Shown here piece by piece: positions 10,755-63,019 of a stretch of DNA of 64,000 bases; the stretch's first letter is position 1, and every line of letters starts with the position of its first letter. The position numbers and the translations under genes are program-made. This stretch comes from Mizuhopecten yessoensis (Eukaryota), in assembly GCF_002113885.1 (NCBI RefSeq), contig NW_018407068.1, positions 293,849-357,848 on the forward strand. Direction: 5' to 3'. The notes beneath the pieces are model-generated. The model had not been told where the DNA came from, searched no databases, and saw only the letters and a program-made list of their open reading frames with translations.

Positions 10755-11802
10755 TTCTTGTATTTAATGCATATGGATAAGAAAAACTCCTGTTCTTTGC
10801 ATATATACAATGTAATGATGTATATAAAACTCCTGTTTTTATTAATTAATTGTCCATGTGTCATCAATGTTGTTTCTGTAAATAGAAGAAATATTGATTG
10901 ATTACTTGTAATTAATTCTACAATATCTGGGTAACAATCTGTACCTGTAAACATATTATCAGGACAGTATAATTATAGTGTAAACTGGGCGATCCCATTC
11001 TTCCTAATATAGAAGTACATTCTTTCTCAATCATTAATACATATAGTAGCCATGCACTTGTAAATATAAATATAAAGGGGGGATCTCAACAGTGTCATGA
11101 CTTGGGGACTAAGAATGAGGTATAGCCCACAATCAATCCTGGTACACTGTAACACATTTGATTTTGACTCATCATTCACAAACCTAACGCATGTGTCAAA
11201 AAGTGTTCAATTAAAGGCGCTGCTTCTAAAAGTGACCAAATAGTAAAATATGTCCGTCATTATGCAACTGACGGTCGCAAATATGTATTTATTTTTCAAA
11301 AAGTACTTGCATTTAAAGAATTAAAACAAGTAGAACAAGTCTTCTAATGACACAATGTTCTTGTTTGTTGTATCGGAATACCCTGTGAGTGTGTATATAT
11401 GTTCTTTATTCCATTAGTGTCAGTCCAAAGCTTACTCAACCAATCAGTATGGTAACTGATGTACGACACAAAAACTCACAGGAAACACTTTTGACTATGT
11501 ATGTAAACAAAACATGTACATCTTTTGGAGAGAGAAAAAATCTGGAACGAATATTTTTCAAATGATGCCAATTAATAAATAATGTCTAAAAGTGTAAACT
11601 AAAAGTGAAAAGTTAAAACACGCAAAAAAATTGTATTCAAATCAACTTATATTTATTGAACATAAAGTTAACATCTCCAAAAGATATTTCTATCTATCTC
11701 ATTGATTATCCGTAAATATGAACAAATCACATTGGTTGGCAAACTTAGCATGTTGGATTTGCATAAAGAATTTGGTTGAAACATCTTAACAATATCTACA
11801 GC

Positions 11803-13107
11803 AACAAGTACTAATTGTAATGGGGGACCATTACAGATGTCCCCCAAATTGGGGCAGTTTGGGGGACATCTGTAATCTGTAATCCGCAAAGATGCATCAG
11901 AAAAGGATCGCAATCAGAATCCTCTGTGTAGTTGCTATGGCAACGGAACGTATGCAATTGAATTTGTAGTACCCCTATATAGCAATTTTCATCGAAATCA
12001 AACAATATCTAAATTGCGACCAATTAGAATCCTTCTTGTGGTTGCTATCGTAACTAAACTTATGTGGTTGAATTTGCAGTACCCTTATATCCCTTTATGA
12101 CGATTTTCTTCAAAATCGAACAATATCTTAATTTCCACCAATCAGAAGCCTTCTTGTGGTTGCTATATGGTTGCTATGGTAATGGAACTTATGCTGTTGA
12201 ATTTTCAGTCCCCTTATACCCCTCTATAACGATTTTCATCAAAATCAAATAATATCTAAATTTCGACCAATCATAAGCCTCAGTGTGGTTGCTATGGTAA
12301 CGAAACTTGTTGTTTTATTCGCAGTCCCCTAATTACCATTTTTCATAAAAATTAAAAATAAATATAAATTTCGACCAATCAGAAGTGCCTCCATTTGGTT
12401 GCTATGGCAACGAAACCTATGCGGTTGAATTTGCAGTCCCCTTATACCCCAAGGTACCAATTTTCATCAAATTCGAACAATATCTGAATTAGCAGTCCCC
12501 TAATATCGCTATAAATAATATACCAATTTTCATCAAAATCGAACAATAAATAAATTTCGACCAATCAGAAGCCTCCGTGTGGTAGCTATGGCAACGAAAC
12601 AAATGCGGTTGAATTTGCAGTCCCCTAATATCCCTATATACCTATTTTCATCAAAATTGAACCAAGTTTGAAGAAAATCGGTTAACATTTGTTATAGTTA
12701 TTGCACAGAAACAAAACCCAGCAGATAATTAAGGTTTTCGTTACTCAAGGGGCCATAGCTCCCCAAATACGGTCCCCTAAAAGTGGTCATCGAAATTGGT
12801 CAAGCCCTTAAGGCATTTAACCCTGTGACTAAGTTTGAAGAAAATCGGTTGACATTTGTTGTATTTATTGCATGGAAACAAATCGCGGCAGATAATGACG
12901 TTTCATTATTCAAGGGACCAGAACTCTGCCAAATGGGGTCTGCTGAAAGTGGTCATCGAACTTGGCCGAGCCCTTAAGGCATTTAACCCTGTGACCAAGT
13001 TTGAAGAAAATCGGTTAACATTTGTTGTAGTTATTTCAAGGAAACGAAGCGTGACAGACAGACCCATATTAATATCCCCCGTTTCGGTGAAAGCGGGGGA
13101 TAACAAG
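11803..13107. mobile_element. Satellite-bearing non-autonomous element (Helitron/Helentron-like) in the EME1 5' region
   Basis: 19-bp perfect stem at 11828-11874; ~110-bp repeats (GACCAATCAGAAGCC...GTTGCTATGGCAACGAAAC); ~170-bp repeats (AAGTTTGAAGAAAATCGGTTAACATTTG); GACA microsatellite; terminal hairpin TCCCCCG...CGGGGGA. Confidence 0.65.
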
Positions 13108-13129
13108 AAGTAGAGGACCATGAAACATG

Positions 13130-27800: not shown

Positions 27801-29419
27801 GTACATGGGGGGGGGGGAAATAATAGGGCTACTGTTGTACAGGGGGATATTAATGAAGCTACTATTGTAGAAGGGGATAAAATAATGTGGCTACTGTTGT
27901 ACAGGGGGACAAAGTAATGTGGCTACTGTTGAACGGGGGGGGCAAATAATGTGGCTACTGTTGTACAGGGGGACAAAGTAATGTGGCTACTGTTGTACAG
28001 GGGGACAAAGTAATGTGGCTACTGTTGTACAGGGGGGGGGGGACAAAATAATGAGGCTACTGTTGTACAGGGAGACAAAATAATGAAGCTACTATTATAG
28101 AGGGGACAAAATAATGTGGCTACTGTTGTAGAGGGGGACAAATTAATGACGCTTCTATGAGACAAGGTCCCCAATGAGTAGCAATCCACTGGACCAAAAC
28201 AAGCAAAATTCCAATCTTATTCCTGACATTAAATTATAATCTTCCAAAAGTGTTTTTCAGTTTTTCTATGACAATTATTAGAGGTCTCTGTGCAGTGGTA
28301 CTGTGATTCACTTATATTTCTTATCCAATGAAGTTTCAGTACAGGTTGCAACTGGCATTAGGTTTTTTTCTCTACAAAGCTATAATGCATTGGACATTTC
28401 ACCTACAGCTGGAATCTGGGATGGTCGTATCAGCAGTCATCAGCTGGTACGAAGACTTGTCCGATTCTGTCTGGTCCGGGAGCAGGGTGACCACTCTGTT
28501 GTACATGTCCACCATGACAGTCTGGCGGGCCTCATTGTGTGCCAACATACAGTGGGTCGCCAGGTAAAATAGGATGACTTCCGCTGTAATATATCAGGGC
28601 CAGGTGAAACTAGGCTACATGAATATTGGATATAAAATACATACACTGGGCCAGATTAAATAGGACTACATTAGATACTTTACATACATTTGTATACTGT
28701 ATTTGATGTAATAAAACTGCATCCTCTAGTAAAAAGAAAGACACCCAGGAGATTTTATAAGAAAACATGAGTGCTTAACCAAAACAACTGAATGCATATC
28801 TTAAAATTCCAGATTCCTTTCCATTTCCGTTTACATGTCCAACGTGCCATAAAATCCTTATCTCAAGTTGATTTCAGTTTTACCCAAACATGTATCTAAA
28901 TAATAAACAAAAAATGAATTGATCATGCAATAAAATCTCATAGGTCATCAAAGCTTTACCTGTAGGAAACCCTGTCATGTCAAGATACTTGAGCTTTGTT
29001 GGTGTGCGCTTTTTCAGACACTCCAGGAATGTGTGTGATAAACAGGTGGTGTAGCGTAGACTCTGACGGACAATGTCAGAAAGATAGGTCGAATTGTACA
29101 GGGGCACCACAGATGTGAATAAAGTTGGGGCAAGCTTTTTCAGAGTCAGGCTGTTAAGCGGCCAATGAGATATTAGCGTTTCCATGGAGCGGTCACGATT
29201 ATCGAGCAGGGCTGCCTGCATGAGAGCCACACTGAGGTGGTGTGGGACATGCTGCACTGCTTCTTTTGTAACCGTTGCATCACGCACTATGTACTCTGCA
29301 CACAGATTCACCAGTGATTTTATGGGTGTCTTTCTATACTGTCCATGGTTTGGTTCTGCATGCAGGTCCAGTGGATACACTGCTCCTTGATAATGATCAT
29401 ACTGTAGAGATGCCTGCAT
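24854..29419 (-). CDS. LRRC14: LRRC14/PRAME-family leucine-rich repeat protein, 526 aa, 4 coding exons
   Basis: Exons 29419-28960, 28583-28407, 27320-27145 and 25621-24854 join in frame (1581 nt). N-terminal BC-box-like KSLVNLCAEYIV, PRAME-like segments (LISHWP, KLKYLDMTG) and C-terminal RI-type LRRs (LDLSCNSI, LDLSNNRV, LDLSENNL). The symbol is a family-level best guess. Confidence 0.8.
27368..28150. repeat. ~33-bp minisatellite in two related sub-arrays, LRRC14 intron
   Basis: GACAAAATGATACAGCTTCTGTGGTACAAGGGA (about 27370-27655) and the related GACAAAGTAATGTGGCTACTGTTGTACAGGGG (about 27760-28150). Confidence 0.93.
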
Positions 29420-36300: not shown

Positions 36301-39004
36301 CCCTTTAGCTCAGTGGTAAAGCATCGGGCTGGAGAGTCGAGGGTTCCAGCCCCAGCGACGGCACTATCTTTATCACTATTCTCGTCCTACTACATTACAT
36401 CACTTCTAAACCTTCATCAAGGCAATCACTGATTTTACTCCATGAGAATCCGTAATTGATCGGTAGAGACCACCATCACATTCATATATGTATTTAATAT
36501 TGAGTCAGACTGTCAAAGGAAAATCCTTTAACATTGTCTCCTAATGAGTGACAGTTCAAGATGTTGGACACAAGAATGTGTATATAGTTCATTTTATCTG
36601 CCAACATAATCCCACAATTACCAACATTTACTGAAAATTCCAACACATATTTATTATTGTACAATAGAGGTCAAGACCTAACTGCTCTATACTCAAAATG
36701 TATTAAGGTCTTTGAGATGTAAATATTTAATGTTGATATGTTTTAGACAATATTGGATAGTAAACAACAACAAAATCCGAGCATAGAAATTAATTTTAAG
36801 GGCAGAATTTCAAAATCAATGTAGGCTAACTTGTATCTTAAACAACCAATATTTTGTCCTATATAATATGTATGTGTTATATAATATGTATGAAATAATA
36901 TATACCCCAAGAAGTACCTTGGACATAACTGTTTTTTGTTATCATCTTATCATATTGTTAATATATACGGTACATATAATACATCATGTATAAAGCAAGG
37001 TTTTGTTTCTTTCCTTTTTTTATAGACTTTTATGAAGGTGAAGATTTTACAGTTAGAGAAGTATCACAAGGCAAAAGAAGATGAAAGAGATGAAATAGAA
37101 CTTAATCCTATCAATGTGTTCCTTGAAGCTCTGGAAAACTGTCGCCCCAATGTTCATACAACTAGAGTCCTGCGAGGCGGGGTCATGTATGAGGTAAATT
37201 AATGTTTAGGATGTATTCTTCTGAAGTTTGAATGAGGTTCAAATCTCATGTTGATCTAGTGTTAAATGTTTTTTTTATGAAATGGTGTGTGTGACACACA
37301 GTGTAGGTGTGGTGTGCAACACATCCTTATAATGTGTAGATTTGGTATGAGACACATCATTGTGCTGTGTATGTGTGGTATGAGACACATCATTGTGCTG
37401 TGTAGATTTGGTACATTACACATCCTTGTAATGTGTATGTTTGGTATGAGACACATCCTTGTAATGTGTAGATTTGGTATGAGACACATCATTGTAATGT
37501 GTAGATATGGTATGAGACACATCCTTGTAATGTGTAGATTTGGTATGAGACACATCCTTGTAATGTGTAGATTTGGTATGAGACACATCATTGGAATGTG
37601 TAGATTTGGTATGAGACACATCATTGTGCTGTGTATGTGTGGTATGAGACACATCATTGTGCTGTGTAGATTTGGTATGAGACACATCATTTTAATGTGT
37701 AGATTTGGTATGAGACACATCATTGTAATATGTAGATTTGGTATGAGACACATCATTGTAATGTGTAGATATGGTATGAGACACATCCTTGTAATGTATA
37801 GATTTGGTATGAGACACATCCTTGTAATATGTAGATTTGGTATATTACACATCCTTGTAATGTGTAGATTTGGTATGAGTCACATTGTAATGTGTAGATT
37901 TCGTATGAGACACATCATTGTAATGTGTAGATTGAGACACATTGTGCTGTGTAGATTTGGTATATTACACATCCTTGTAATGTGTAGATTTGGTATGAGA
38001 CACATCATTGTGCTGTGTAGATTTGGTATGAGACACATCATTGTGATGTGTATGTGTGGTATGCGACACATCCTTGTGCTGTGTATATGCAGTGTATGAC
38101 ACATCCTTGTTTCTGTGCTGTGAAGTGTATGTCACATCTGTATGCGTAGGTACATCCTATGTAAGTGTGGTGTATTTTATACATCCTTTCTACTGTGTAT
38201 GTTAGGTTAGGTGTACTTAGGAAGTGTGGTGTATAACATATCACTTGCCTTGTTGGTAGCTGATACATTCTTGTGCTGTGTATATGCAGGTATCTGTGAG
38301 ATCATTATTGCTGATATTTATCGTATGATCGTTGTTTTCAGGTTCCCATTGCTTGTAATCCTAGCACACAAACAGCTAAAGCCATGAGGTTCCTTGTAAA
38401 AAGTGCTATGGAGAAGGAAAGGGAAACAAGATTCACAGATATGCTTGCCAGAGAGTTGATAGATGCGAGCAACAATGAGGCAAGAACTACTGTTATTCAT
38501 AAATGATACTCACAGTAGGATCAAACCAATTGGGTTTTTTTGTTTGACATATCTTAATTTCACATCATTTTGTCTGACAGCATTTTGGTTGTTGGTGTAT
38601 GTTTATTAATTTATATGATAGAAAGCTTGATAGAAACCCTGATATTCATACCAGACAAACTGATATTTAGCTGTACAGCTGTCTAGACAAATGCTTTTTT
38701 ATAACAAATAAGCAAATATTGCACTTCAATCCTTATGGACAATATATATAAGGCATTACATAATTAAGTGACATATCATTTTATATGTGATTGGTCACAT
38801 TTATGCTTCATGTAAGGACATTCTTTTACTTTTTTGTGTGTTTATTTTTGTCATAGTGCTGACAGTAACCATTTAGTTTCTGTACTTGTTGAAATCCTGA
38901 TTGGTTTTGTTTGTGTGTTTTAGGGTAAAAGTGTAAGAAAGAAGCAGGACCTACTGAAGCGCTGTGATGACAATAAAGCATTTTCCTCATTCAAGTTTTC
39001 ATGA
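30398..39004 (+). CDS. MRPS7: Mitochondrial ribosomal protein S7 (uS7m), 6 exons
   Basis: Exons 30398-30462, 32954-33121, 36083-36146, 37026-37193, 38342-38479 (GC donor) and 38924-39004 join in frame. uS7 motifs: KFINIVMKKGKKKLAR, ALENCRP...VLRGGVMYEVP, LARELIDASNNEGKSVRKKQDL. AATAAA signals follow the stop. Confidence 0.93.
33237..35788 (-). mobile_element. IS3EU-like DNA transposon remnant with TIRs and a decayed integrase-type transposase
   Basis: TIRs TATGAAAGCCTATT...CTCATTTTCTTAAGAGAAAAA and TTTTTCTCTTACGAAAATGAG.TCAATAGGCTTTCGTA. Minus-strand fragments 34602-34034 read YVSNAPDYVWHVDSYDTLKPYGIAINGCIDGYSRK. Flanks are ttgatt/tggatc. Confidence 0.7.
34650..35617 (+). mobile_element. HINE-like element (~155-bp core family) nested in the IS3EU-like element
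   Basis: Reverse complement of the 7717-8704 core; ends CCAGGTGAGCGATACAGGCCCTCTGGGCCTCTTGTT. Confidence 0.8.
36284..36395 (+). mobile_element. tRNA-derived SINE-like element, copy 2 (internal deletions)
   Basis: TAGCTCAGTGGTAAAGC A-box; shares 5' TCAGCTGTAGGGAATTTCCC and 3' GACGGCACTATCTTTATCACTA with copy 1. Confidence 0.75.
37287..38290. repeat. 33-bp minisatellite in MRPS7 intron 4
   Basis: Unit TGTGTAGATTTGGTATGAGACACATCATTGTAA; regular to about 38090, then decays towards the acceptor. Confidence 0.95.
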
Positions 39005-41238: not shown

Positions 41239-44200
41239 TCATGGTGCTAGTAGTTGGGATGCTTCAATCATTCCTGCATCTCGAAGCGCCTTCTCCAACT
41301 CTTTGCTGTTAGTCTGACCTCCGGACTTTTCTCTATACTTCATTAAGATCAATGTTGCCTGAAAATACAATTGAAAGGAAAGTCATTGATGTTACAATGG
41401 ATTGATCTTAATGACTATAACTTTGCATGTCTTCTCGAAAATCTGATACAAACTAACATTACTTTCATGAAGATGATAAACATTGGTACAACTTAACACT
41501 GTCCTATCCTGATACAAATGGGTACTGTTCTATCCTGATACAAATGGGTACTGTTCTATCCCGATACAAATGGGTACTGTTCTCTCCTGACACAACTGGG
41601 CGAGACCTTGAAAAGTCATAAGTGGGTACTGTTCTATCCTGACACAACTGGGTCCTGTTCTATCCTGACACAACTGGGTACTGTTCTATCCTGACACAAC
41701 TGGGTACCATCCTATCCCGACACAACTGGGTACCGTTCTATCCTGATACAAATGGGTACTGTTCTATCCTGACACAACTGGGTACCGTCATATCCTGATA
41801 CTAATGGGTACCATCCTATCCTGACACAACTTGGTACCGTTCTATCCTGATACAAATGGGTACCATCCTATCCTGACTCAACTGGGTATCGTCATTTCCT
41901 GATACTAATGGGTACCATCCTATCCTGACACAACTGGGTACCATTCTATCCTGATACAAATAGAAACCGTTCTATACTGACATAACTGGGAACCGTTCTA
42001 TCCTGATACAAATGGGTACCATCCTATCCTGACACAACGTGGTATCGTCATATCCTGACACAACTGGGTACCGTTCTATCCTGATACAAATGGGTACCAT
42101 CCTATCCTGACACAACTGGGTACCGTTCTATACTGATACAACTGGGTATTGTTCTATCCTGACACAACTGGGTACCGTTCTATCCTGATACAAATGGGTA
42201 CCATCCTTTCCTGACACAACTGGGTATCGTTCTATCCTGATACTAATGGGTACCATCCTATCCTGACACAACTGGGTACCGTTCTATACTGATACAACTG
42301 GGTACCGTTCTATCCTGACACAACTGGGTACCGTTCTATCCTGATACTAATGGGGACCATCCTATCCTGACACAAATGGGTACTGTCCTATCCCGATACA
42401 ACTGGGTATCGTCATATCCTGATACAAATGGGTATCTTCGTATCATTATACAAATGTGTACCGTCTTATGCTGATACAACTGGATACCGTCCTATCCTGA
42501 CACAAATGGGTACTGTCCTATCCTGATACAAATGGGTACCATCCTATCCTGACACAACTGTGTACCGTTCTATACTGATACAACTGGGTACCGTTCTATC
42601 CCGACACAACTGGGTCCCGTTCTATCCTGATACTAATGGGTACCATCCTATCCTGACACAACCGGGTACCGTTCTATACTGATACAAATGGGTACCATCT
42701 TATCCTGACACAACTGGATACCGTTCTATCCTGATACAAATAGGTACCATCCTATCCTGACACAAATGGGAACCGTCTTATGGTGAAACAAATGGGTACT
42801 GTTCTATCCCGATACAACTGGGTATCGTCATATCCTGATACAAATGGGTATCTTCATATCATTATACAAATGTGTACCGTCTTATGCTGATACAACTGGA
42901 TACCGTCCTATCCTGATACAACTTAATTGATACCATCCTATCCTGATACAACTTGGTACCATCCTATCCTGATACATCTCAATTGGTACCATCCTATCCT
43001 GATACAACTTGGTACCGTCCTATCCTGATGGAACTTGGTACCGTCCTATGCTGATACAACTGGGTACCGTCCTATACTGATACAACTGGGTACCATCCTA
43101 TCCTGATACAACCTGGTACTGTCCTATCCTGATACAACTGGGTACCATCCTATCCTGATACAACCTGGTACTGTCCTATCCTGATACAACTGGGTACCCT
43201 TCTATGCTGATACAAATTGGTACCGTCCTATGCTGATACAACTTGGTATCGTCCTATGCTGATACAACTGGGTACTGTCCTATGCTGATACAACTGGGTA
43301 CCGTCCGATAAGATGGTACTGTCCTATCCTGATACAACTGGGTACCCTTCTATGCTGATACAAATTGGTACCGTCCTATGCTGATACAACTTGGTATCGT
43401 CCTATGCTGATACAACTGGGTACTGTCCTATGCTGATACAACTGGGTACCGTTCTATGCTGATACAACTGGGTACCGTCCTATGCTGATACAACGGGGTA
43501 CCGTCCTATGCTGATACAACTGGGTACCGTCCTATGCTGATACAACTGGGGACCATCCTATCCTGATACAACCTGGTACTGTCCTATCCTGATACAACTG
43601 GGTACCGTTCTATGCTGATACAAATGGGTACCGTCCTATCCTGATACAACTTGGTACCGTCCTATGCTGATACAACTTGGTACCGTCCTATGTTGATACA
43701 ACTTGGTACCGTCCTATGCTGATACAACTGGGAACCGTCCTATGCTGATACAACTTTGTACCGTCCTATGCTGATACAACTTGGTACCGTCCTATGCTGA
43801 TACAACTTGGTACCGTCCTATGCTGATACAACTGGGTACCGTCCTATGCTAATACAACTTGGTACCGTCCTATGCTGATACAACTTGGTACCGTCCTATG
43901 CCGATACAACTTGGCACCGTCCTATGCTGATACAACTGGGTACCGTCCTATCCTGATACAACTGGGTACCGTTCTATGCTGATACAACTGGGTACCGTCC
44001 TATGCTGATACAACTTGGCACCGTCCTATGCTGATACACCTTGGTACCGTCCTATACACAACTTGGTACCGTCCTATGCTGATACAACTGGGTACCGTCC
44101 TATCCTGAGAGACTCAAGTCAGGATTACGAGCACTACTGTGTTCAAATTTAAGGAATGACAGGTTCGAATGAATCCGGAAAGGAATTGACAAGCTAGACA

Positions 44201-47200
44201 GGCACAACTTGTTTAACAAATTAACTTATTTCAGTACTAAGCGATATCATCTAGATAGGAACCAAGAAGGATTAAAGTAGCCAGTGAAACTCTTTGTCGT
44301 AGAGTCGTAGATCTTTGGAAATGTCTACCAAATGACGTAATTGAAAATGCAGTATGACGCAATCGGATAATGAAACACAGTTGAAATCGTAACTAAAGAA
44401 GTATTCTGCTAGTTATTGCTGTCGACATAATGGTTATACCAGAGACATATAAAGCCAGTAGTATATATACATCTCTGGTTATACCAATGCGCCATAAAAA
44501 AGAACCAGAAGCCCCTATAAATCAAAAGAAAACACACCAGGAACCCACATAAATCCTGTGTCGTTCAGGATGTCCCCTTACATACCAAACTATGCCGTTA
44601 ATCAGGACTGCTGTATAGCATCTTGGGTATTATGTCACAGCAGATAAAGTCCACCCATGCTTATGTTACAAAGCCCTTTCCGGGACAAAATCCTGGCTAC
44701 TTGAAAGGGAATTTTACCGTTCTCTTTGTTCAATCAATCCGTTTAAATTTTGTTAATTTGTATTTAAAACTAACCAGATGCTTATTATCCCGAGATTTCC
44801 CCTTCAATTCGTCATAGTCCTCCTTGGTGAGGCCAAGCTTATTGCAAAGGCGTTCCAGATCCTTGGTATAGATCTTATCTGTCAGGTGCTTGATGGTACG
44901 GTCGGACGGGCTGGCTCGTGCCGTCGAAAACCCGCCGATAAAGGTGCTCGGTGAGGGGGTCGGTGCCGCGCTAGTTTCTCCACTGGCCAGCGCCACGTCC
45001 ATCTGGAACTGTACAACGCAATATCTTGTAAGAAAAATACATAGAAAACAGTTTGTCCATTTTAGTATGGAAATTGGGAAATGATTTCCAGTATGGAGTT
45101 TCAGTGGAAAAGGATGAGAAAGTTTTAGTCTAAGGGGATAGTTAGTCTAAATTGAAGGGGATAAAATGGGATGCAAATGGATGCTAATCTTAGAGAAAAA
45201 GTGGTTGAGGGTGAGCATTATTTGCAATACCAACCTCGGGTAAGTCTTCGTAGAGACGTTCCCTCATGTAATTTGGCAACACTTCGAACTGAAGAACTTG
45301 CTGAAGTATTTCTTCAGATATGGCTCTTTTAATTCCGTCGACAAACTCCTTCTCGCTAAAGTTTCCTGTGTAAATTTTAGTTGAAATTTTAAATGAATTT
45401 TAAATGAATATAGAAGCTTTCTTCAGATGCTGTAGAGATTTTTTTAATCATTTTTAATAACCAACATGTGTAACACTTCGATAACTGAATGCAATATTAA
45501 ATGTAGCAAAACATAACGCAACGCCCATTCAGTCTGTAATATGGAAGAGCCTCGTCTGTCAGGACAATAACCTAGTATTTACAATATTCAGTATTATACG
45601 AGTTACCAACGAAGAATAATACGAACGTTGACTGTTGAACTCACCATTTTTGTCCGAGTCCATTTGGTTAAACACGACGTCCGCAATTCCAGGTATGGCC
45701 TTGCAAAAGACTGACATTCTTACAAACATGCAATAAGGAAATGTCCATTAACTAGAATTCCTTCAAAATTCGAGATAATATCTAATAAAAAAAATCTGTA
45801 CTTTTACAAATGTTTCAAATGCGAAATAGTACGTTTGACGTTAAAGTGATGTCAATTTTTGTTCGGTTTTATTGTCGTCTGATATCTTGCATAAGAAAAA
45901 AACTATGGCCATAGTTCAAGGGTTGTGATGAGAAATCGGCGCATCTCTGTCCGTTATAAAAAGAAGATAAATATGTACAACATGTCGCCTGTAAGCTCTT
46001 GATATGGCCAAAAATACGCTTACCTTTTTATCTTCTGGGTTGTGATATACTATTTCCAAGACCTTTATAAAGTTTGCCCGTGTCACATTCTTTGCACTTC
46101 CTAGCAGGTTGAAAATAGCTGAAGCAGATAAAACAACCATAAAAAACTCTCAGAATGTCCCACTTAATATTAATCGTGCTTACTTCAATATTAATCTGAA
46201 TAAAATAAAAAATGGCCATTTAAAAACGTTTATATACGATATCGACATTTCGTCATTCTGCAGGACTGGTATATGCACAAATAAAAAATTCCAACTACAT
46301 ACAAAAATTACTATAACTCGTGCCTCCCACACAGAAATGTCCTTCATACAACAATTACTATAACCCTCGTGCCTCCCACACAGAAATATCTTTCATACAA
46401 CAATTACTATAACTTTCGTGCCTCCCACACAGAAATGTCCTTCATACAATAATTACTATAACTCGTGCCTCCCACACAGAAATGTCCTTCATACAACAAT
46501 TACTATAACCCGCGTGCCTCCCACACAGAAATGTCCTTCATACAACAATTACTATACCCCTCGTGCCTCCCACACAGAAATGTCCTTCATACAACAATTA
46601 CAATAACTCTCGTGCCTCCCACACCGAAATGCAAACCTCAGAGTTTGGTTTCTTTGGTTCTATTACTCAGTATACAACATACTCTTCTGCCTTGCACACA
46701 GAAGTACGAACCTCGCAGCTTGGTGTCCGTGTCTCCAGCCTCACACCACTTCATCCCTCGAAGGAAATTCTCAAATGTCAACTTCTTTTTACTAGACAGG
46801 AACATCTTCAATATCTAAAAAAAAAGTTCTAGATTTTTAAAAAGTTCAAATACGTTTTCAAGTCTTTGTTATGATATTTCAACAGTACTATTATTGTGAC
46901 TAGCCTGTCTTAAACATTTAATTATCAATAAGGTATTGTCTGAACAGCCTCATAACTAATTATTGGTCATATTAAAAAATGCATGCAACAGACGCACACA
47001 TTTTTTTTTAAATTTGGTAATTCATAACAAATGCCAACTATGAATTGCAATGCAATATATATTTTTTTTCATTCTAGGACTCAACGGTGATGCTAGGGGC
47101 CAGACAAATAAACAATCAAAATTGTCTAAGCTACTGTTGAAACAGAGGGGCATGTGCGTAAAACCCCTTAATTTATTAATTTAAAAATGTAGAGGAGTAC

Positions 47201-50200
47201 TATTCATTTCAAATTAAATCATCTGTAAAGTGTGTATATTATATCATCTGTAAAGTGTGTATATTATATCATCTTATATCATCTGCAAAGTGTGTATGTT
47301 ATATCATCTGTAAAGTGTGTATGTTATATCATCTGTAAAGTGTGTATATTATATCATCTGTAAAATGTGTATATTATATCATCTGTAAAGTGTGTATGTT
47401 ATATCATCTGTAAAGTGTGTATGTTATATCATCTGTAAAGTGTGTATATTATATCATCTGTAAAGTGTGTATATTATATCATCTGTAAAGTGTGTATATT
47501 ATATCATCTGTAAAGTGTGTATATTATATCATCTGTAAAGTGTGTATATTATATCATCTGTAAAGTGTGTATATTATATCATCTGTAAAGTGTGTATATT
47601 ATATCATCTGTAAAGTGTGTATATTATATCATCTGTAAAGTGTGTATATTATATCATCTGTAAAGTGTGTATATTATATCATCTGTAAAGTGTGTATATT
47701 ATATCATCTGTAAAGTGTGTATATTATATCATCTGTAAAGTGTGTATATTATATCATCTGTAAAGTGTGTATATTATATCATCTGTAAAGTGTGTATATT
47801 ATATCATCTGTAAAGTGTGTATATTATATCATTTGTAAAGTGTGTTTATTATATCATCTGTAAAGTGTGTATATTATATCATCTGTAAAGTGTGTATATT
47901 ATATCATCTGTAAAGTGTGTATATTATATTATCTGTAAAGTGTGTATATTATATTATCTGTAAAGTGTGTATGTTATGAACCGTGCTACTACTCAAAAGA
48001 TGTAACTGTGGCCATCAATGTTTTCATCAATGAAATAATTTACTTCAATAAAGGAAAATATAATATACACTTTTTACCGTTTTAAAATTACGCCGAGATA
48101 CAAAAACTGTCCATCCATTGAGAAATGTGTCGTGCCCCATTTCACTCGTCCCTTGACAAAAACATCGTTTGTAAAGGGATATACTCACCGGTTTGTGAAG
48201 GCGTCTTGTTTGATAAAACAACCTCATTCTTTACTCATGAGTTTACTCACCTCTCCCTTGAACAATACACTTTGAAGATGGCGTCATAGATGTTGGGTGT
48301 ACTCGCCCCCTTTGAAGAAGGCGTCATATTTGTGGGGTGTACTCACCCCTTCGACGAATGCATCATTTTTGTGTGGTGTAATCACCCCTTTGACGAAGGC
48401 ATGCTGTTTGTGGGGTGTACTCACCCCTTTCACGAAGGCATACTGTTTGTAGGGTGTACTCACCCCTTTGACGAAGGCAAACTGTTTGTAGGATGTACTC
48501 ACGCCCTTTGACGAAGGCATACTGTTTGTGGGGTGTACTCACCCCCTTTGACGAAGGAATACTATTTGTGGGGTGTACTCGCCCCCTTTGACGAAGGCAT
48601 ACTGTTTGTGGGGTGTACTCACCCCCTTTGACGAAGGCATACTGTTTGTGGGGTGTAATCACCCCTTTGACGAAGGCATACTGTCTTTGGGGTGTACTCA
48701 CTCCCTTTGACGAAGGCATACTGTTTGTAGGGTGTACTCACCCCTTTGACGAAGGCAAACTGTTGGTAGGGTGTACTCATGCCCTTTGACGAAGGCATAC
48801 TGTTTGTGGGGTGTACTCACCCCCTTTGACGAAGGCATACTGTTTGTTGGGTGTACTCACCCCTTTGACGAATGCATACTGTTTGTAGGGTGTACTCTCC
48901 CCTTTGACGAAGGCAAACTGTTTGTAGGGTGTACTCACCCCCTTGACGAAGGCATACTGTCTGTGGGGTGTAGTCACCCCCTTTGACGAAGGCATGCTGT
49001 TTTTAGGGTTTTCCCACCCCCTTGGACGAAGGTAACTGTCTGTGGGGCGCACTCACCCCCTTTGACGAAGGCATCCTGTTTGTGGGGTGTAATCACCCTT
49101 TTGTCGAAGGCATACTGTTTGTAGGGGGTACTCACCCCTTTGGCGAAGGGAAACTGTTTGTAGGGTGTACTCACCCCCTTGGACGAAGGTAACTGTCTGT
49201 GGGGTGCACTCACCCCCTTTGACGAAGGCATACTGTTTGTGGGGCGTACTCACCCCTTTGACGAAGGCATACTGTCTGTGGGGTGTACTCACCCCCTTTG
49301 ACGAAGGCATACTGTATGTGGGGTGTACTCGCCCCCTTTGACGAAGGCATACTGTTTGTGGGGTGTACTCACCCCATCGACGAAGGCGTCATATTTGTTG
49401 GGTGTACCCACCCCCTTTGACGAAGGCGTCATATTTGTGGGATGTACTCACCCCTTTGACGAAGGGATACTGTTTGTGGGGCTTACTCACCCCCTTTGAA
49501 GAAGGCCTCTGTTTGTGGGGTGTACTCACCCTTTTGACGAAGGCATACTGTCTGTGGGGTGTACTCACCCCCTTTGACGAAGGCATACTGTTTGTTGGGT
49601 GTACTCACCCCTTTGACGAAGGCGTCATATTTGTTTGGGTTCTCACCCATTTGACGAAGGCGTCATATTTGTAGGATGTACTCACCCCTTTGACGAAGGC
49701 GTCATATATGTGGGGTGTACTCACTCCTTTGTCGAAGGCATACTGTTTGTAGGGTGTAATCACCCCTTTGACGAAGGCATACTGTTTGTGGGGTGTAGTC
49801 ACCCCCTTTCACGAAGGCGTACTGTATTTGGGGTGTACTCACCTCTTTGACGAAGGCGTTATATTTGTTGGGTGTACTCACCCCCTTTGACGAAGGCATA
49901 CTGTTTGTAGGGTGTACTCACCCCTTTGACGAAGGCAAAATGTTTGTAGGGTGTACTCACCCCCTTTTGAACGCCCTTTGACGAAGGCAAACTGTTTGTA
50001 GGGTGTCCTCACCCCTTTGCCGAAGGCGTCATATTTGTGTGGTGTACTCACCCCCTATGCATCATTTTTGTGTGGTGTAATCACCCCTTCGACGAAGGCA
50101 TACTGTATGTGGGGTGTACTCATCCGTTTGACAAAGGCATACTTGGGGTGTACTCACCCTTTTGACGAAGGCGTTCTGTCTGTGGGGTGTACTCACGCCT

Positions 50201-53200
50201 TTGACGAAGGCAAACTGTTTGTAGGGTGTACTCATCCCTTTGACGAAGGCGTTCTGTCTGTGGGGTGTACTCACCCCCTTCACGAAGGCGTCATATATGT
50301 GGGGTGTACTCACTCCTTTGTCAAAGGCATACTGTTTGTGGGGTGTACTCACCCCCTTTGACGAAGGTATACTGTCTGTTGGGTGTACTCACCCCCTTTT
50401 GACGAAGGCGTACTGTCTGTGGGGTGTACTCACCCTTTTGACGAAGGCGTCATATTTGTTGGGTGTACTCACTCCTTTGTCGAAGGCATACTGTTTGTTG
50501 GATGTAATCACCCCCTTTGACGAAGGCATACTGTTTTTGGGGTGTACTCACCCCCTTTGCCGAAGACATACTGTTTGTTGGGTGTACTCACCCCTTTGAC
50601 GAAGGCGTACTGTCTGTGGGGTGTACTCACCCCCTTTGACGAAGGCATACTGTATGTGGGGGGTACTCGCCCCCTTTGACGAATGCATACTGTCTGTGGG
50701 GTGTACTCACCCCATCGTCGAAGGCGTCATATTTGTTGGGCGTACTCACCCCCTTTGACGAAGGCATACTGTATGTGGGGTGTACTCTATCCCTTTGACG
50801 AGGGCATACTGTATGTGGGGTGTACTCTACCCCTTTGACGAGGGCATACTGTATGTGGGGTGTACTCACCCCCTTTGACGAAGGCATACTGTTTCTGGGG
50901 TGTACTCACCCCGTTTGGCGAAGGCATACTGTCTGTGGGCTGTACTCATCCCTTTGACAAAGGCGTCATATTTGTTGGGTGTACTCACCCCCTTTGCCAA
51001 AGGCGTCATATTTGTGGGATGTACTCACCCCTTTGACGAAGGCATACTGTTTGTGGGGCTTACTTACCCCCTTTGACGAAGGCATTCTGTTTTTTGGGTG
51101 TACTCACCCCTTTGACGAAGGCGTCAAATTTGTTGGGGTTCTCACCCCTTTGACGAAGGCGTCATATTGGTAGGATGTACTCACCCCTTTGACGAAGGCG
51201 TCATATATGTGGGGTGTAATCACTCCTTTGTCGAAGGCATACTGTTTGTAGGGTGTAGTCACCCCCTTTCACGAAGGCATACTGTCTGTGGGGTGTAGTC
51301 ACCCCCTTTGACGAAGGCATACTGTTTGTGGGTTGTACTCACCTCTTTGACGAAGGCATACTGTCTGTGGGGTGTAGTCACCCCCTTTCACAAAGGCGTA
51401 CTGTCTTTGGGGTGTACTCACCCCTTTGACGAAGGCATACTGTTTGGAAGGCATACTGTCTGTGGGGTGTAGTCACCCCCTTTAACGAAGGCATACTGTT
51501 TGTGGGGTGTACACACCTTCTTTGACGAAGGCATACTGTTTGTGGGGTGTACTCACCTCTTTGAGGAAGGCATACTGTCTGTGGGGTGTAGTCACCCCCT
51601 TTCACAAAGGCGTACTGTCTTTGGGTTGTACTCACCCCTTTGACGAAGGCATACTGTTTGTTGGATGTACTCACCCCTTTGACGAAGGCATACTGTCTGT
51701 GGGGTGTAGTCACCCCCTTTGACGAAGGCATACTGTTTGTGGGGTGTACTCACCTCTTTGAGGAAGGCATACTGTCTGTGGGGTGTAGTCACCCCCTTTC
51801 ACAAAGGCGTACTGTCTTTGGGTTGTACTCACCCCTTTGACGAAGGCATACTGTTTGTGGGGTGTACTCACCTCTTTGACGAAGGCGTCATATTTGTTGG
51901 GTGTACTCACCCCCTTTGACGAAGGCATACTGTCTGTGGGGTGTACTCACCCCCTTTGACGAAGGCGTCATATTTTTGGGGTGTACTCACCCCTTTCACG
52001 AAGGCGTCATATTTGTGGGGTGTACTCACCCCTTTCACGAAGGCGTCATATTTGTGGGGTGTACTCACCCCTTTGACGAAGGCGTCATATTTGTTGGGTA
52101 TACTCACCCCCTTTGACGAAGGTATACTGTATGTTGGGTGTACTAACCCCTTTGACGAAGGCATACTGTCTTTGGGGTGTACTCACCCCTTTGACGAAGT
52201 CATACTGTTTGTAGGGTGTACTCACCCCTTTGACGAAGGCGTCATATTTGTTGGGTGTACTCACCCCCTTTGACGAAGGCGTCATATTTTTGGGGTGTAC
52301 TCACCCCTTTCACGAAGGCGTCATATTTGTGGGGTGTACTCACCCCTTTGACGAAGGCGTCATATTTGTTGGGTATACTCACCCCCTTTGACGAAGGTAT
52401 ACTGTATGTTGGGTGTACTAACCCCTTTGACGAAGGCATACTGTCTTTGGGGTGTACTCACCCCTTTGACGAAGTCATACTGTTTGTAGGGTGTACTCAC
52501 CCCTTTGACGAAGGCGTCATATTTGTTGGGTGTACTCACCCCCTTTGACGAAGGCGTCATATTTTTGGGGTGTACTCACCCCTTTCACGAAGGCGTCATA
52601 TTTGTGGGGTGTACTCACCCCTTTGACGAAGGCGTCATATTTGTTGGGTATACTCACCCCCTTTGACGAAGGTATACTGTATGTTGGGTGTACTAACCCC
52701 TTTGACGAAGGCATACTGTTTGTGGGGTGTACTCACCCCTTTGACGAAGTCATACTGTTTGTAGGGTGTACTCACCCCTTTGACGAAGGCGTCATATTTG
52801 TTGGGTGTACTCACCCCCTTTGACGAAGGCGTCATATTTTTGGGGTGTACTCACCCCTTTCACGAAGGCGTCATATTTGTGGGGTGTACTCACCCCTTTG
52901 ACGAAGGCGTCATATTTGTTGGGTATACTCACCCCCTTTGACGAAGGTATACTGTATGTTGGGTGTACTAACCCCTTTGACGAAGGCATACTGTTTGTGG
53001 GGTGTACTCACCCCCTTTGGCGAATGCATTCTGTCTGTGGGGTGTACTCACCCCCTTTGACGACGGCATACTGTTTGTTGGGTGTACTCACCCCTTTGAC
53101 GAAGGCGTACTGCCTGTAGGGTGTACCCATCCCGTTTGACGAAGGCATACTGTTTGTAGGATGTACTCACCCCCTTTCACGAAGGCGTACTGTCTTTGGG

Positions 53201-55054
53201 GTGTAGTCACCCCTTTGACGAAGGCATACTGTTTGTTGGATGTACTCACCCCCTTTCGCGAAGGCGTACTGTCTTTGGGGTGTACTCACCCCTTTGACGA
53301 AGGCATACTGTCTGTGGGGTGTAGTCACCCCCTTTCACGAAGGCGTATTGTCTTTGGGGTGTACTCACCCCTTTGACGAAGGCATACTGTTTGTGGGGTG
53401 TACTCACCCCTTTGACGAAGGCGTCATGTTTGTGGGGTGTACTCATCCCTTTGACGAAGGCATACTGATTGTGGGGTGTACTCATCCCTTTGACGAAGGT
53501 ATACTGTTTGTGGGGTGTAATCACCCCTTTGACGAAGGCATACTGTTTGTATGATGAACTCATCTCTTTGACGAAGGCATACTGTTTGTAGGGTGTACTC
53601 ATCTCTTTGACGAAGGCATACTGTTTGTGGGGTGTACTCACCCCTTTGACGAAGGCATACTGTCTGTGGGGTGTACTCACGCCCTTTGACGAATGCGTCA
53701 TGTTTGTGGGGAGTACTCAAACCTTTGACGAAGGCATACTGTTTGTAGGGTGTACTCACCCCTTTGACGACGGCATACTGTTTGTAGGGTGTACTCAACC
53801 CTTTGACGAAGGCATACTGTCTGTGGGGTGTACTAACGCCCTTTGACGAATGCCTCATGTTTGTGGGGAGTACTCAAACCTCTGACGAAGGCATACTGTT
53901 TGTAGGGGGTACTCAACCCTTTGACGAAGGCATACTGTCTGTGGGGTGTAATCACCTCTTTGACGAAGGCATACTGTTTGTAGGGTGTACTTATCTCTTT
54001 GACGAAGGCATACTGTTTGTAGGGTGTACTCACCGCTTTGACGAAGGCATACTGTTTGTGGGGTGTACTCACCCCCTTTGACGAATCCGTCATGTTTGTG
54101 GGGAGTACTCACTCCCTTTGATGAAGGCATACTGTTTGTTGGGTGTACTCACCCCTTTGAAGAAGGCGTCATATTTGTTGGGTGTACTTACCCCTTTGGC
54201 GAAGGCGTCATATTTGATGCCTTGTACAGTAGATTCTGTGACAATTCCCTCTTTGTTACAGCCGAGCTGGCGGAACCGGAACCACAGTCTCTCCGTCTCC
54301 GCTATACTCACTGTAATATAATTATCTGTTATAAACACGCTGTTTAAATGTCAATGGCAAGACATTTACATAGAAGAGTGTTTCGGTGAAATGTCAACAT
54401 TTACAGGTGATACGTCTCCGTGATGAGATCTCTTCATGTAACAACTAGGTGTCACCTTTCTGACAAGACTTCTCTACAACGGTTTATTTTGTTCTTAAAG
54501 TTGGTGTCTTAAAGTAAAGAGAGGCATCTCTACCTGTCTGATAAATGAGACTCTTCCACCCTACCGGTGCTATCTCCTAACTGACGAGAACTCCCGAACC
54601 AATCCGACGAGACAATTCCGTCTTACTACCGGAACTCATCTCTCCACCCTATTTACGAGACTCTCAAAATTACAGGAAAGACAACGTCTAACCTACCAGT
54701 GCTACTTCTCCTGTTAACTGACTAGAACTTCCATTTTGGCGAGACCTGTCCATCTTACCAGTGAAACCCGTCTCTCTACTGAGACCTCTCAGCGTTATAG
54801 GTGGTACTCTCCTGCATTACGAGTAAGATACAGTATCGATAATGGCAAGCCAACTTTACATTTATTCAAGGAGCATTGGAAAAAAATGTTATTTCGGCTT
54901 GGCATAATCTATCGTCACCATTACCATATCGTCACGTACGTTCTGTTGCTATGGCGTGGGTCGTTATCCAGTTAGAGTCCGTAGACTTAATCTTGTCCTT
55001 GACCACCAAACACTCCGAGTCAGGCAGGAATATTAAACTGGCAACGGAACCCAT
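41239..55054 (-). CDS. Predicted N-myristoylated calcineurin-B/CHP-like EF-hand protein with C-terminal Death-domain-like region, 321 aa, 8 coding exons
   Basis: Exons 55054-54940, 54310-54192, 46814-46712, 46118-46024, 45699-45645, 45365-45235, 45002-44775 and 41358-41239 are all GT-AG and phase-consistent (966 nt). Starts MGSVAS; CHP/CNB-like segments ETERLWFRFRQL, LTFENFLRGM and GDTDTKLRAIF; canonical EF loop DSDKNGNFSEKE; Death-fold pattern DLERLCNKLGLTKEDYDEL...ATLILMKYREKSG...ELEKALRDAGM. Confidence 0.85.
41498..44108. repeat. 26-bp minisatellite (~100 copies) in the last intron of the EF-hand/Death-domain gene
   Basis: Unit GTCCTATCCTGATACAACTGGGTACC and variants; TATGCTGA variants dominate the right half. 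Confidence 0.97.
46308..46632. repeat. 47-49 bp tandem repeat (~6-7 copies)
   Basis: Unit TCGTGCCTCCCACACAGAAATGTCCTTCATACAACAATTACTATAACCC. Confidence 0.95.
47218..47977. repeat. 25-bp minisatellite (~30 near-identical copies)
   Basis: Unit ATCTGTAAAGTGTGTATATTATATC. Confidence 0.97.
48140..54216. repeat. 39-40 bp tandem array (~150 copies) derived from an exon end plus splice donor
   Basis: Plus-strand unit TTTGACGAAGGCATACTGTTTGTGGGGTGTACTCACCCC. The right-most copy overlaps exon 54310-54192 and its donor; copies at 48140-48280 are decayed. Confidence 0.97.
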
Positions 55055-55836
55055 CACTAAAATACAGGACAGGGAAAAAACACAATAATATGCAACACTA
55101 TACATGATCGACAGATAAATAGACGGTACCCGTGATAACTGATATTGTTCCCTATTCGACTGAATACGCCTCCTCTTTGCACTTTTGAGGAGTTACTGGT
55201 ATCGTAATTGGAAATAAATAAAACATTTTCTATTATGCTTTGTTATATTTCATAACATATTATGGGTGGATTAGTCTAAAAAAGAAACTGTCTTCCACAC
55301 GGTCGTCCGGGTTCGATTCCCGTGTGATCGAAGACTATTTATCAGAGATATTCTTCCAACCATTGACCTCCCCATGGCTTTGCATAAACATATGAAATTT
55401 AAAGAAATGTTATTGGTGGTTTATATAAATACTTGTTTTTTACGATATTTCCGAAAATTGGTATGTAATAGAGATTCATGGTGCAACTTTGAAGATTAAA
55501 TATAAGGCAGATATTATAATTAGACTAGAAAGGTATAGACGGTGTAGTACCTACCCATAACACACTCTAGCGCGGTATACTTAATTAATGTCCCACTATC
55601 GCCGTGCTATCTGATCAAAACGTATTCAGCAAAACATTAAATGAACATGAATCAAATCTACAATTAATAATTGTGTTGGAATGTAACAATTATGATAGTT
55701 TAAAGAATTTATGAGCGTAAATTTCGGTACGTCTTTCTATGCAATATTGATAAAATTGGAATGAATGGTGTTATGTGATAATAGGTTTTAGATATATTTC
55801 CCACTGTACAGATAAATAATTCAGTATAATTCTTAC

Positions 55837-55930
55837 CTTTGTAATCCGATCTCACAATTGAAAATCACATAACTTCGTCAAGCTTCTACTTCACACCACG
55901 TACACGTTCACGTTCACCACCACGTTTTAA
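55837..55930 (-). other. Probable 5' UTR exon of the EF-hand/Death-domain gene
   Basis: Strong donor AAAG|GTAAGA at 55837/55836. The first coding exon has an acceptor (tattttAG) 2 nt before its ATG, which implies an upstream non-coding exon. The 5' boundary is approximate. Confidence 0.55.
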
Positions 55931-57399
55931 TGACGGAACCTTACTGTTGAATACCTTTGTTTCGCTTTAGAACAGGGGCACTTGTTAGTCGTATATATCT
56001 TGTATGGCTATGATAAATCCGTCGAAAAAAATGTTCATATCAATATGTTTATCAATGTATTAATCCTGTTTTGATTTAAAATCCAGACCTACACAAATTA
56101 TTCTGTTTGGATGTGATTTTGTATAATGATATCAGAGTTGGAAACTGTGGAAACATGTCGTTAAGTTGATTAGACAGGTAAAATTGAGAACGGGGTGGTA
56201 AAGTGCATGGCGGGTAATTTATATCTGACAGGACTGTTCCAAACCCCTCTTAGAGTCGAGATCACAGTTCCATGCGTACGACCTCTTTGTCACGGTCGTT
56301 CCCCTCTAAGAGTTCTGTAGAGGATTGCGCTTGATAACATCGGATTGTAAATACATGCCCAGCCGAGTTCTCCATACGTACACCTCGATGTGTCTATACG
56401 TATTGGTATTAAACTGCCCGAAATTTGGGAATGCTTTCTTTATTTTACCTATTTACTTTCTTGCATATGTATATCAAATGCTTATTTTTTTGAAAATATG
56501 TAAAAGTGAAATTAATATGTTCTCTTTTACACAAATTTAAATTTTATATATGATCAGCTCAATTATTGTATGCGGTAATTTGCGTGATTTAAGATTAGCG
56601 CAAACCGTTAATAATACAGTATATAATCTAAATGAATCTCTTTCAGAATGATAACGAAGTTGCGGCGCTTGTCAATAACAAAAATTTAAGTTCCGCGAAA
56701 TATAAGCGACATAAACAGTAAAACAGTGCGTATCAGTAAGTATATATACAGTAAAACCCCGATATACCGCCACCTTCCGTTCAAGGACATTTTTTGGCGG
56801 TACAACGGGTTTGGCAGTACGAGTTGTCCCTGCTAAATGACAGGTGGATGAACGCTTGTTTGTTTTGGGGCACATATATATCCAACACTTACCAATGAAA
56901 ACTCAAATATACATGTATTTATGCAATTTTTAATATACACACCGTTTTTGAAAGAATAATTAGTTCGGAAATGTTGACTACACGAGTACCGCGTCGAGAG
57001 TGTCAGTTTTAGGTGCCCGTATTTAGTTTAACTTACAATTGTCAAATAATGTCTGCATAGCGGTGCCAATATTCGCATTTCTCTACTGCAAATGCCATCA
57101 TTTCTGTACGTCAGACTATGTAGCCAAGTGTAAATGTTCGACTAAGTAAAGAACCGTCTCAATATCCTGTTTCTCTGCCGCACACCAGGCGGAGATCGTC
57201 AAGAGTCCGTCTCGTCGGGATTTTTTCACATCAATAATGCCATCGTCTGATAATACCTGAGTGGGTCGCAAGCATCTGCTCATTTCAATAAACTGTCTCA
57301 TAGTCAAACGTAAATCGGTATCGAGATCAAGTCTTATAGACTTACACTCAGCGGCGATTTTTTATTTTTTTTATGTGAAGCTGAATTTAACGAATGGCT

Positions 57400-60664: not shown

Positions 60665-61894
60665 CAGGACTAGATCTTTACTCACAGCAGTAGGAATTGT
60701 CATCAGATGAAAGTGTCATGAACTATGATTAATCCAATTTTCCTCTTATCATAATTCAGTTAGAATGAATAAATACCATGCATGTTTAGAAGACTAAGGG
60801 AAATAACTCCATTTCTCTTTTGATGATAACAACACTAATGAAGGAGTTCTGTGGTAATTGTCAAATTGGGTTCTCACTCTAAAGTAAAAACAGTAGGATC
60901 AACTAAAACTGGTGGATATTCCATGAGGAGAATGATGTGAAATCTGTATGTATAAATATTACTATATATGATTTGTTATTATGAAATCCATGTCATTAAA
61001 ATTGAAAAATGACATTTGATTCGAACAGGGTAAGTAAACAAATCAAAATAATCTGCTATAGGTAAACAAAATATTCATTCCAGTTCAGATCTTAACACAG
61101 TTATATTTTTATATTAATTATTCCAAAAGATACTAGGTAATTTAGGATGTGAGGACTGTTCCTAGGTCGGGACAATAATACAACCACCATCAGTTAGTGA
61201 AATATTCCCTACACTAAATACGATGATAAATGACATTATATCATAATTGCCCTTATATTAGACTCCCCTGTCACCCATTAAATGGGAGAAGTTTTTAGTT
61301 AAAAATATACGTTAATTAAACAGTTGATTAACACCGGTTGTTATATTTTGATTAAAATGATGACCTTTGGAACATTTAAGATTGAACACATGCGTCAGTT
61401 GTTTTAGTGCTCCTTCATAAAACACATTTCTATAATAAAGCACTAGTACAAGATGGAAATTAATAAAACAAAAACCTTCCTCTTCCAATAAATAAAATTA
61501 TACATTTAACTACATGTAATTTTAATTTTATAGTTTACAATTTCATACTTTAAACAGAAAAACATATAATAAGAAATGAGGTATAGATAGTAAGATATCG
61601 TAAGTGTGAACATACAACATAACACTAAAACTGCTTGTAGTCCTAATCTATGGGGCAGGCTTTGCAAATTATACACATGTTGAAATTCTCCGGTAGCTAT
61701 AAAAACATTTCCAATGTAATTGATTACTTTACAATGCTGTCATGCTTAACAGTAAGTTACAGTACTTCAAACAGATCAAATAGATGTTTGTCACTTAAAT
61801 AGGATAGAAGTCAAAGTTAGCTAGGTTGCCTCCCATCTTACACTATCACAGACAACACAATGGAATGTTTAACTGTCTCAGATTGTAAATGTAA

Positions 61895-62804
61895 ACTTAC
61901 TAGGAATCACTATTTATGTTGTGGATGGTGTACGCTTGCTAGGAATCGCTGTCTATGTTGTGGATGTTGTACACTTGCTAGGAATCACTGTCTATGTTGT
62001 GGATGTTGTAAGCTTGCTAGGAATCACTGTCTATGTTGACGATGTTGTAAGCTTGCTGGGAATCACTGTCTATGTTGTGGATGTTGTAAGCTTGCTAGGA
62101 ATCACTATCTATCTTGTGGATGTTGTAAGCTTGCTAGGATTCACTGTCTATGTTGTGGATGTTGTAAGCTTGCTAGGAATCACTGTCTATGTTGTGGATG
62201 GTGTAAGCTTGCTAGGAATCACTATCTATGTTGTGGATGCTGTAAGCTTGCTAGGAATCACTATCTATCTTGTGGGTGTTGTAAGCTTGCTAGGATTCAC
62301 TGTCTATGTTGTGGATGTTGTACGCTTGCTAGGAATCGCTGTCTATGTTGTGGATGTTGTACACTTGCTAGGAATCACTGTCTATGTTGTGGATATTGTA
62401 AGCTTGCTAGGAATCACTATTTATGTTGTGGATGGTGTAAGCTTGCTAGGAATCGCTGTCTATGTTGTGGATGTTGTACAGTTGCTAGGAATCACTGTCT
62501 ATGTTGGGGATGTTGTATGCTTGCTAGAAATTACTGTCTATGTTGTGATGGGGTAAGCTTGCTAGGAATCACTATCTATGTTGGGGATGTTGTAAGCTTG
62601 CTAGGAATCACTATTTATGTTGTGGATGGTGTAAGCTTGCTAGGAATTATTGTCTATGTTGTGGATGTTGTAAGCTTGTTAGGAATCACTGTCTATGTTG
62701 TGGATGTTGTATGCTTGCTAGAAATTACTGTCTATGTTGTGATGGTGTAAGCTTGCTAGGAATCACTATCTATGTTGTGGATGCTGTAAGCTTGCTAGGA
62801 ATCA
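61895..62804. repeat. 39-bp minisatellite (~23 copies)
   Basis: Unit GCTTGCTAGGAATCACTGTCTATGTTGTGGATGTTGTAA. Confidence 0.96.
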
Positions 62805-63019
62805 ATGTTTCTAAATTATTTGATTTAAGGATCACCGTACCACTGCCAAAAATTTTAACGATGTGTTTGAAACTATTTTTTCCAGCATGACTATAGCTTT
62901 AATTAATTGTTTATGAAAAGAAAACCCAACTTTGCGGGACTTTAATGAGAAATAAAAATGATGAAATAAACAAAATATAATCAACAACAGTTGTTTTAGT
63001 GTAAAAAAACCCAACATAG

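Follow-up and report, generated by a model that had tools for sequence, protein, structure and literature searches.

The window analysed here, a 64,000-nucleotide stretch of the Mizuhopecten yessoensis genome (contig NW_018407068.1, positions 293,849 to 357,848 of the forward strand; coordinates below count from its first letter), carries on its minus strand a gene, LOC110453675, that fuses two domains on one spliced transcript: an EF-hand-like domain of the type found in NCS, calcineurin B (CNB) and CHP proteins, and a C-terminal Death domain. The product is a conserved, uncharacterised variant of the Death-domain adaptors. Our preferred reading, to which we assign a probability of roughly 0.6, is that of a lipid-anchored EF-hand and Death adaptor, encoded by a fast-evolved scallop duplicate, whose N-terminal module would clamp a target while its Death domain would recruit partners.

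The initial annotation of the window, made from its letters, took this gene to be a hidden one. It had in fact been modelled before, both in RefSeq (XP_021358409.1, P0018; 323 aa, named "uncharacterized") and, without exons 1 and 2, in an older GenBank entry of 242 aa (OWF47985.1, KP79_PYT05440), and about 50 mollusc homologs are held in public databases. The gene is thus already annotated, but it is unnamed and has no described function. Literature searches found no publications describing the EF-hand and Death family or its architecture, or naming its gene identifiers, in keeping with the original impression that no characterised protein is built in this way. The Aplysia immunome paper mentions the EF-hand in TIR/ROCO proteins only.

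Gene structure and transcript

Eight open segments on the minus strand, running from 55054 to 41239, make up the coding region (Table 1); all of their borders are of the GT..AG type and their phases are mutually compatible. The eight translations are exact substrings of XP_021358409.1 and tile its residues 1-323 except for three split codons. Exon 7, searched against 1.8 billion representative proteins, returned a 323-aa protein (87% identity, residues 207-284) whose cluster includes XP_021358409.1 and the older 242-aa model. Full-length analyses were run on database proteins and not on the joined exons. Exon-by-exon Pfam searches were nearly empty because single exons are too short, yielding a weak Death match at profile positions 49-82 in exon 8 and a weak match to the EF-hand-like USP32_N in exon 3.

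Table 1. Exons of LOC110453675 and repeat arrays, in window coordinates
Feature	Position	Strand	Description
Exon 1	54940..55054	-	Coding; ATG at 55054; MGSVAS N-myristoylation motif
Exon 2	54192..54310	-	Degenerate EF1; donor GTAAGT; the intronic 39-bp satellite begins with its last 15 nt
Exon 3	46712..46814	-	Degenerate EF2; junction of exons 3 and 4 in RNA contig (run X1, record 4)
Exon 4	46024..46118	-	Degenerate EF3; RNA contig and protein match
Exon 5	45645..45699	-	First half of EF4 loop; RNA contig and protein match
Exon 6	45235..45365	-	Second half of EF4 and conserved C-terminal helix ending LPE; paralog exon also found
Exon 7	44775..45008	-	'FQ', disordered S/T/P linker, Death-domain helices 1-3; RNA acceptor 45008
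Exon 8	41239..41358	-	Death-domain helices 4-6 and TGA stop; weak Pfam Death match, RNA, protein match
39-bp satellite	48291..54206	-	5.9 kb, intron 2; amplified from exon 2/intron 2 junction
26-bp satellite	41501..44108		About 100 copies; occupies most of intron 7
Minisatellites	27367-28148, 37301-38085, 41501-44108, 46298-46631, 47213-47977, 61890-62808		

The eight exons, their borders and their phases stand as originally proposed, with the exception of the start of exon 7. Two acceptors lie there in tandem, 6 nt apart (AG at 45010-45009 and CAG at 45005-45003, within window positions 45002-45010). The upstream one, which is used in RNA and in the RefSeq model, starts the exon at 45008 and adds an in-frame 'FQ', so that the corrected product is 323 aa long instead of the 321 aa obtained with the downstream acceptor at 45002; the latter, if used, would remove a family-invariant phenylalanine. 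The choice of 45008 is confirmed by the glutamate and phenylalanine at the junction of exons 6 and 7, both of which are invariant in 46 homologs. At the other end of the gene, an in-frame ATG at 55105, 51 nt upstream of the assigned start codon at 55054, is probably located within an intron of the 5' untranslated region, since a strong acceptor-like site (a pyrimidine tract followed by TAG, 55057/55056) directly precedes ATG 55054; this context suggests that a non-coding exon lies at the 5' end, upstream of 55105.

Fourteen runs from seven studies, either recorded as RNA or guessed to be so, contained 34-47% of the sampled words of positions 44775-46814, where the exonic share is about 30%. 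Contigs of two runs, X1 and X2, were aligned to window positions 44650-46295, leaving out the long satellites of introns 2, 3 and 7. A single X1 contig of 1101 nt joins exons 4, 5, 6 and 7 in spliced form, the skipped parts reading CT..AC on the plus strand and therefore GT..AG on the strand of the gene, and it continues, as a loose end, into letters matching the reverse-complemented beginning of exon 8. In another X1 contig exon 4 directly follows the end of exon 3, and run X2 contains the spliced form of exons 7 and 8 along with unspliced contigs over introns 4-7. Five consecutive junctions, from exons 3-4 to exons 7-8, are therefore backed by RNA contigs. Among them, the junction initially placed at 45235/45002 does exist in RNA, with its acceptor moved to 45008, and that at 44775/41358 is found both as the X1 loose end and as the X2 spliced form. 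The EF-hand and Death parts, which separate transcripts might have carried, are thus on one transcript, and the gene is expressed.

The two domains

The N-terminal domain was recognised by profile and by fold. A PDB profile search with residues 1-210 returned KChIP4 (E = 3e-13), calcineurin B (3e-10, residues 38-177), NCS-1, calaxin and CHP1, in a range extending to 1e-5, with KChIP outscoring CHP. In the structural model the domain consists of paired helices with short beta bridges, and Foldseek matched it to NCS-1, CHP1/2, KChIP and CNB at target-normalised template modelling (TM) scores of 0.6-0.68 and E-values of 1e-5. A four-EF-hand fold of the NCS/calcineurin-B/CHP type, usually ~170-200 residues long, therefore occupies the ~205 N-terminal residues, much as the initial annotation had it. 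Orthology to CHP1 or calcineurin B is not indicated, identity to every solved relative being 17-21% and all close homologs being mollusc or brachiopod members of the present family.

The protein begins with MGSVAS, which conforms to the MGxxxS consensus, and M1, G2 and S6 recur in at least 90% of the 46 homologs; on the strength of this motif the protein is predicted to be N-myristoylated. Past the EF-hands, a conserved amphipathic helix (residues ~187-207) ends in an invariant glutamate and phenylalanine (E206, F207), and the junction motif LPEF as a whole is invariant in the same homologs. Residues 206-236, a serine/threonine/proline (S/T/P) linker, are disordered in the model.

The C-terminus is a Death domain, as had been proposed. 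XP_021358409.1 matches Pfam Death (PF00531) at 23.0 bits, above the gathering cut-off of 22.6, over residues 245-320 (profile positions 4-81 of 86); one ortholog (P0001) reaches 24.9 bits, and all 46 family members examined are matched, the best at E = 3.9e-20. The AlphaFold model of residues 236-323 forms an antiparallel bundle of six helices with a predicted local distance difference test (pLDDT) score of 79.7. When this model was submitted to Foldseek, the top 28 matches were all Death domains (THOC1, FADD, RAIDD, ankyrin), at TM scores of 0.75-0.83 and root-mean-square deviations of 1.7-2.6 A; the corresponding E-values are weak (0.03-1) because the Death domain is short. A PDB search with the C-terminal family profile gave the Death domains of RIPK1, ankyrin-3, FADD and CRADD at 1e-10 to 1e-8, with THOC1 and PIDD following, to 1e-6. 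Signalling (RIPK1, FADD) and non-signalling (ankyrin, THOC1) Death domains match about equally well, and the matches do not place the domain in any one subfamily.

Family, duplication and possible origin of the fusion

Profile searches recovered about 50 proteins that share this architecture and measure 300-325 aa, mostly one per species, from bivalves (scallops, mussels, pearl oysters, oysters, Sinanodonta, Mercenaria, Mya, Mactra, Solemya and Tegillarca) and from gastropods (Lottia, Patella, Haliotis, Pomacea, Littorina, Batillaria, Babylonia, Aplysia, Elysia, Physella, Biomphalaria, Lymnaea, Arion and Bradybaena). Many of these sequences derive from transcript-sized contigs of 1-2 kb. The database names "ankyrin-3" and "THO complex subunit 1-like" given to some members reflect the match of their Death domain alone.

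Exactly two loci of the family are present in the M. yessoensis genome, the window gene and a paralog, LOC110446688 (C179:874754-883758, minus strand), which encodes 306 aa in the same eight-exon order; its linker is shorter and its EF4 loop non-canonical. A 1306-bp contig, C77809, was considered as a third copy and rejected, as it is 99-100% identical to window positions 54903-56149, around exon 1, and represents assembly redundancy. In a maximum-likelihood tree the family forms a clade of its own and tracks mollusc phylogeny, and the scallop sequences split into two sister groups, A and B (support 100/96), the window gene belonging to A. The A stem measures 1.0 substitutions per site and the B stem 0.14; within A, the product is 88-93% conserved among four scallop genera. 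Bivalves and gastropods otherwise carry roughly one copy of the gene; a duplication confined to scallops produced two, of which the window gene is accordingly the fast-evolved one.

Outside the molluscs a single relative was found, LOC106173230 (P0074) of Lingula anatina (212 aa; positions 10001-13232 of the stretch 289825-313056 of LFEI02000389.1). Its N-terminal domain is homologous (E = 6e-56), it starts with MGxxxS and its six-exon layout matches exons 1-6, but it stops inside the exon equivalent to exon 6 and has no Death domain. A separate gene for a 148-aa Death-domain protein starts ~10 kb downstream on the same strand (position 23070 of the stretch onward). A tblastn search of the interval between the two Lingula genes, in a fetched locus holding the first 163 nt of the downstream one, found no Death exon like those of the family. 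The Lingula arrangement may represent the unfused ancestral state, in which case the family may have originated by fusion of neighbouring genes. A longer scenario, in which fusion on the mollusc stem created a class of lipid-anchored adaptors absent from model organisms and the scallop duplicate then gained a Ca2+ site to become a calcium-gated Death switch, is speculative and we hold it to be improbable as a whole. As a separate observation, retention of intron 6 in M. yessoensis, should the unspliced X2 contig across it be RNA, would terminate the protein soon past exon 6 and leave it, like that of Lingula, with the EF-hand part alone.

Minisatellites with periods of 25-49 bp are unusually abundant in the window, and three of the arrays lie inside introns of the gene. 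The founding unit of the 39-bp satellite consists of the last 15 nt of exon 2 and the first 24 nt of intron 2; the array holds 90 donor-like GGTRAGT sites on the strand of the gene and none on the other, and occurs nowhere else in the genome. Its period equals 13 codons, so that use of the donor of the next unit (54153) would add 13 residues in frame, with the frame closing after about three units. Elsewhere in the window, open frames at 24854-25564 and 28880-29419 (minus strand) are leucine-rich-repeat-like and are probably exons of one gene, one at 16670-17429 (plus) is a reverse-transcriptase fragment of a retroelement, and one at 10011-10754 (minus) is serine/aspartate-rich and exon-like.

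Possible roles and comparison with known systems

In the mechanism that we favour, a myristoyl anchor would hold the protein at the membrane, where a groove like that of NCS and CHP proteins would grip a helix belonging to a target near the membrane. CHP does so with NHE1, KChIP with Kv4 and CNB with CNA. The flexible linker would then present the Death domain, which could recruit Death-domain partners by homotypic contacts, and in the scallop A copy alone calcium could exert additional control through the one near-canonical EF4 loop.

Several observations weigh against parts of this picture. The junctions between exons 1 and 2 and between exons 2 and 3 come from the RefSeq model, colinear ortholog proteins and the exon order of the C179 paralog rather than from reads, and that between exons 6 and 7 was seen in one contig from one study; in run X2 one contig spans intron 6 unspliced (44933-45366). 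The structural model of the full-length protein is of moderate confidence (pLDDT 72, predicted TM score 0.46). As for calcium, acidic ligands are missing from the loops of EF1-3 throughout the family, and the window protein scores 18.9 bits against Pfam EF-hand_1, where the cut-off is 25.4. Its EF4 loop, DSDKNGNFSEKE, has a phenylalanine at position 8, and the glutamate at its bidentate position 12 is found only in the four scallop A orthologs, this position being occupied by Q in scallop B, G in Mytilus, N in oysters and K in Solemya, while S also occurs. Across the family, EF4 is conserved at positions 1 and 6 only, in addition to a glutamate at position 10.

Canonical Ca2+-binding loops number two in CHP1, three in NCS proteins and four in CNB. 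The present family falls below the two or more that mark those groups: EF4 alone is near-canonical (D-x-D-x-N-G at positions 1-6, E at position 12), and this in the scallop A clade alone. The 'Ca2+-gated' label of the initial annotation can accordingly be kept for at most this one loop. Judged from these residues, calcium gating through a single site at most is doubtful, being possible for the window gene and unlikely for the family, in which the N-terminal domain as a whole is probably a calcium-independent binding module.

A role outside immunity and cell death is also conceivable. The EF-hand-like domain could serve a transporter, channel or enzyme as an obligatory subunit, in the manner of CHP, KChIP and CNB, and the fused Death domain a structural or regulatory element, as Death domains are in ankyrins and UNC5, rather than a nucleator of signalosomes. 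All of the closest solved relatives of the N-terminal domain work as obligate subunits or target clamps, the Death domains of ankyrins rank among the best matches by sequence and by fold, and about one copy per species across gastropods and bivalves is what a housekeeping gene would show. RIPK1 and FADD nevertheless match the Death domain equally well, the transporter, channel or enzyme partner is hypothetical, and the rapid change of scallop A after duplication is more typical of functional change. We regard a non-immune membrane regulator as an unlikely, if credible, alternative to the adaptor described above.

Somewhat less probable still, in our judgement, is the reading proposed at the outset, of a Ca2+/myristoyl-switch sensor that gates a Death adaptor into innate-immune (NF-kB) or caspase complexes. 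The EF4 loop of scallop A, the conserved myristoylation motif and a Death profile closest to the signalling domains of RIPK1, FADD and CRADD all speak for it. Yet one loop of four could bind calcium, in scallop A only and with position 12 variable elsewhere, whereas the calcium-myristoyl switches of NCS proteins rely on two or three sites. The Death domains of ankyrin-3 and THOC1 score about as well as the signalling ones. The family, moreover, has few copies per genome and a tree that agrees with that of the species, which sets it apart from the expanded immune Death families; M. yessoensis has at least 61 Death-domain loci, against two of the EF-hand and Death family. Literature searches found no expression or immune-challenge data on the gene.

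Finally, it is very improbable that the gene chiefly yields separate products, EF-only by retention of intron 6 and Death-only from the in-frame ATG at 45002, two codons into exon 7, with the fusion being minor or an artefactual read-through: the unspliced X2 contig, this ATG and the Lingula pair of an EF-only gene and a Death gene would suit such an outcome, but X2 covers other introns too and so probably contains pre-mRNA or DNA, a spliced contig of exons 6 and 7 exists, the fused reading frame is conserved in about 50 species, often on transcript-sized contigs, and the LPEF junction does not vary.

The lipid-anchored adaptor thus remains our preferred reading. EF-hand clamps of the NCS/CHP type and Death-domain adaptors are each well understood, and we know of no studied protein that has both. 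Because the combination is strongly conserved and roughly single-copy in two large mollusc classes, it must do something specific, and may provide a link from a membrane target, and possibly from calcium, to Death-domain assemblies. The wiring of immunity and cell death in molluscs is poorly known and is relevant to aquaculture, and the scallop pair, with a near-canonical EF4 in A and a degenerate one in B, offers a natural comparison for calcium dependence. The surprise is moderate, since the gene was already predicted in public annotation and Death-domain shuffling in lophotrochozoans is well known.

With CHP1/CHP2, calcineurin B, KChIP1-4 and NCS-1/frequenin, the scallop protein shares four helix-loop-helix units over ~170 residues and an MGxxxS N-terminus; it differs from them in its low identity, in forming its own clade, in three degenerate loops, in an additional conserved C-terminal helix and in a fused Death domain, the last of these absent from the known proteins. 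The Lingula protein shares the N-terminal domain, the MGxxxS start and the layout of exons 1-6 and lacks the Death domain. Like FADD, CRADD/RAIDD, RIPK1, ankyrin-G and THOC1, the scallop protein has a Death domain that passes the Pfam cut-off and forms a six-helix bundle, but the domain that accompanies it is an EF-hand module and not a DED, CARD, kinase or ZU5-UPA. To our knowledge, DAPK1 is the sole well-known polypeptide to couple a Death domain with calcium sensing. There, calcium acts on a kinase through a separate calmodulin, whereas the scallop protein has no kinase and carries its EF-hand module built in.

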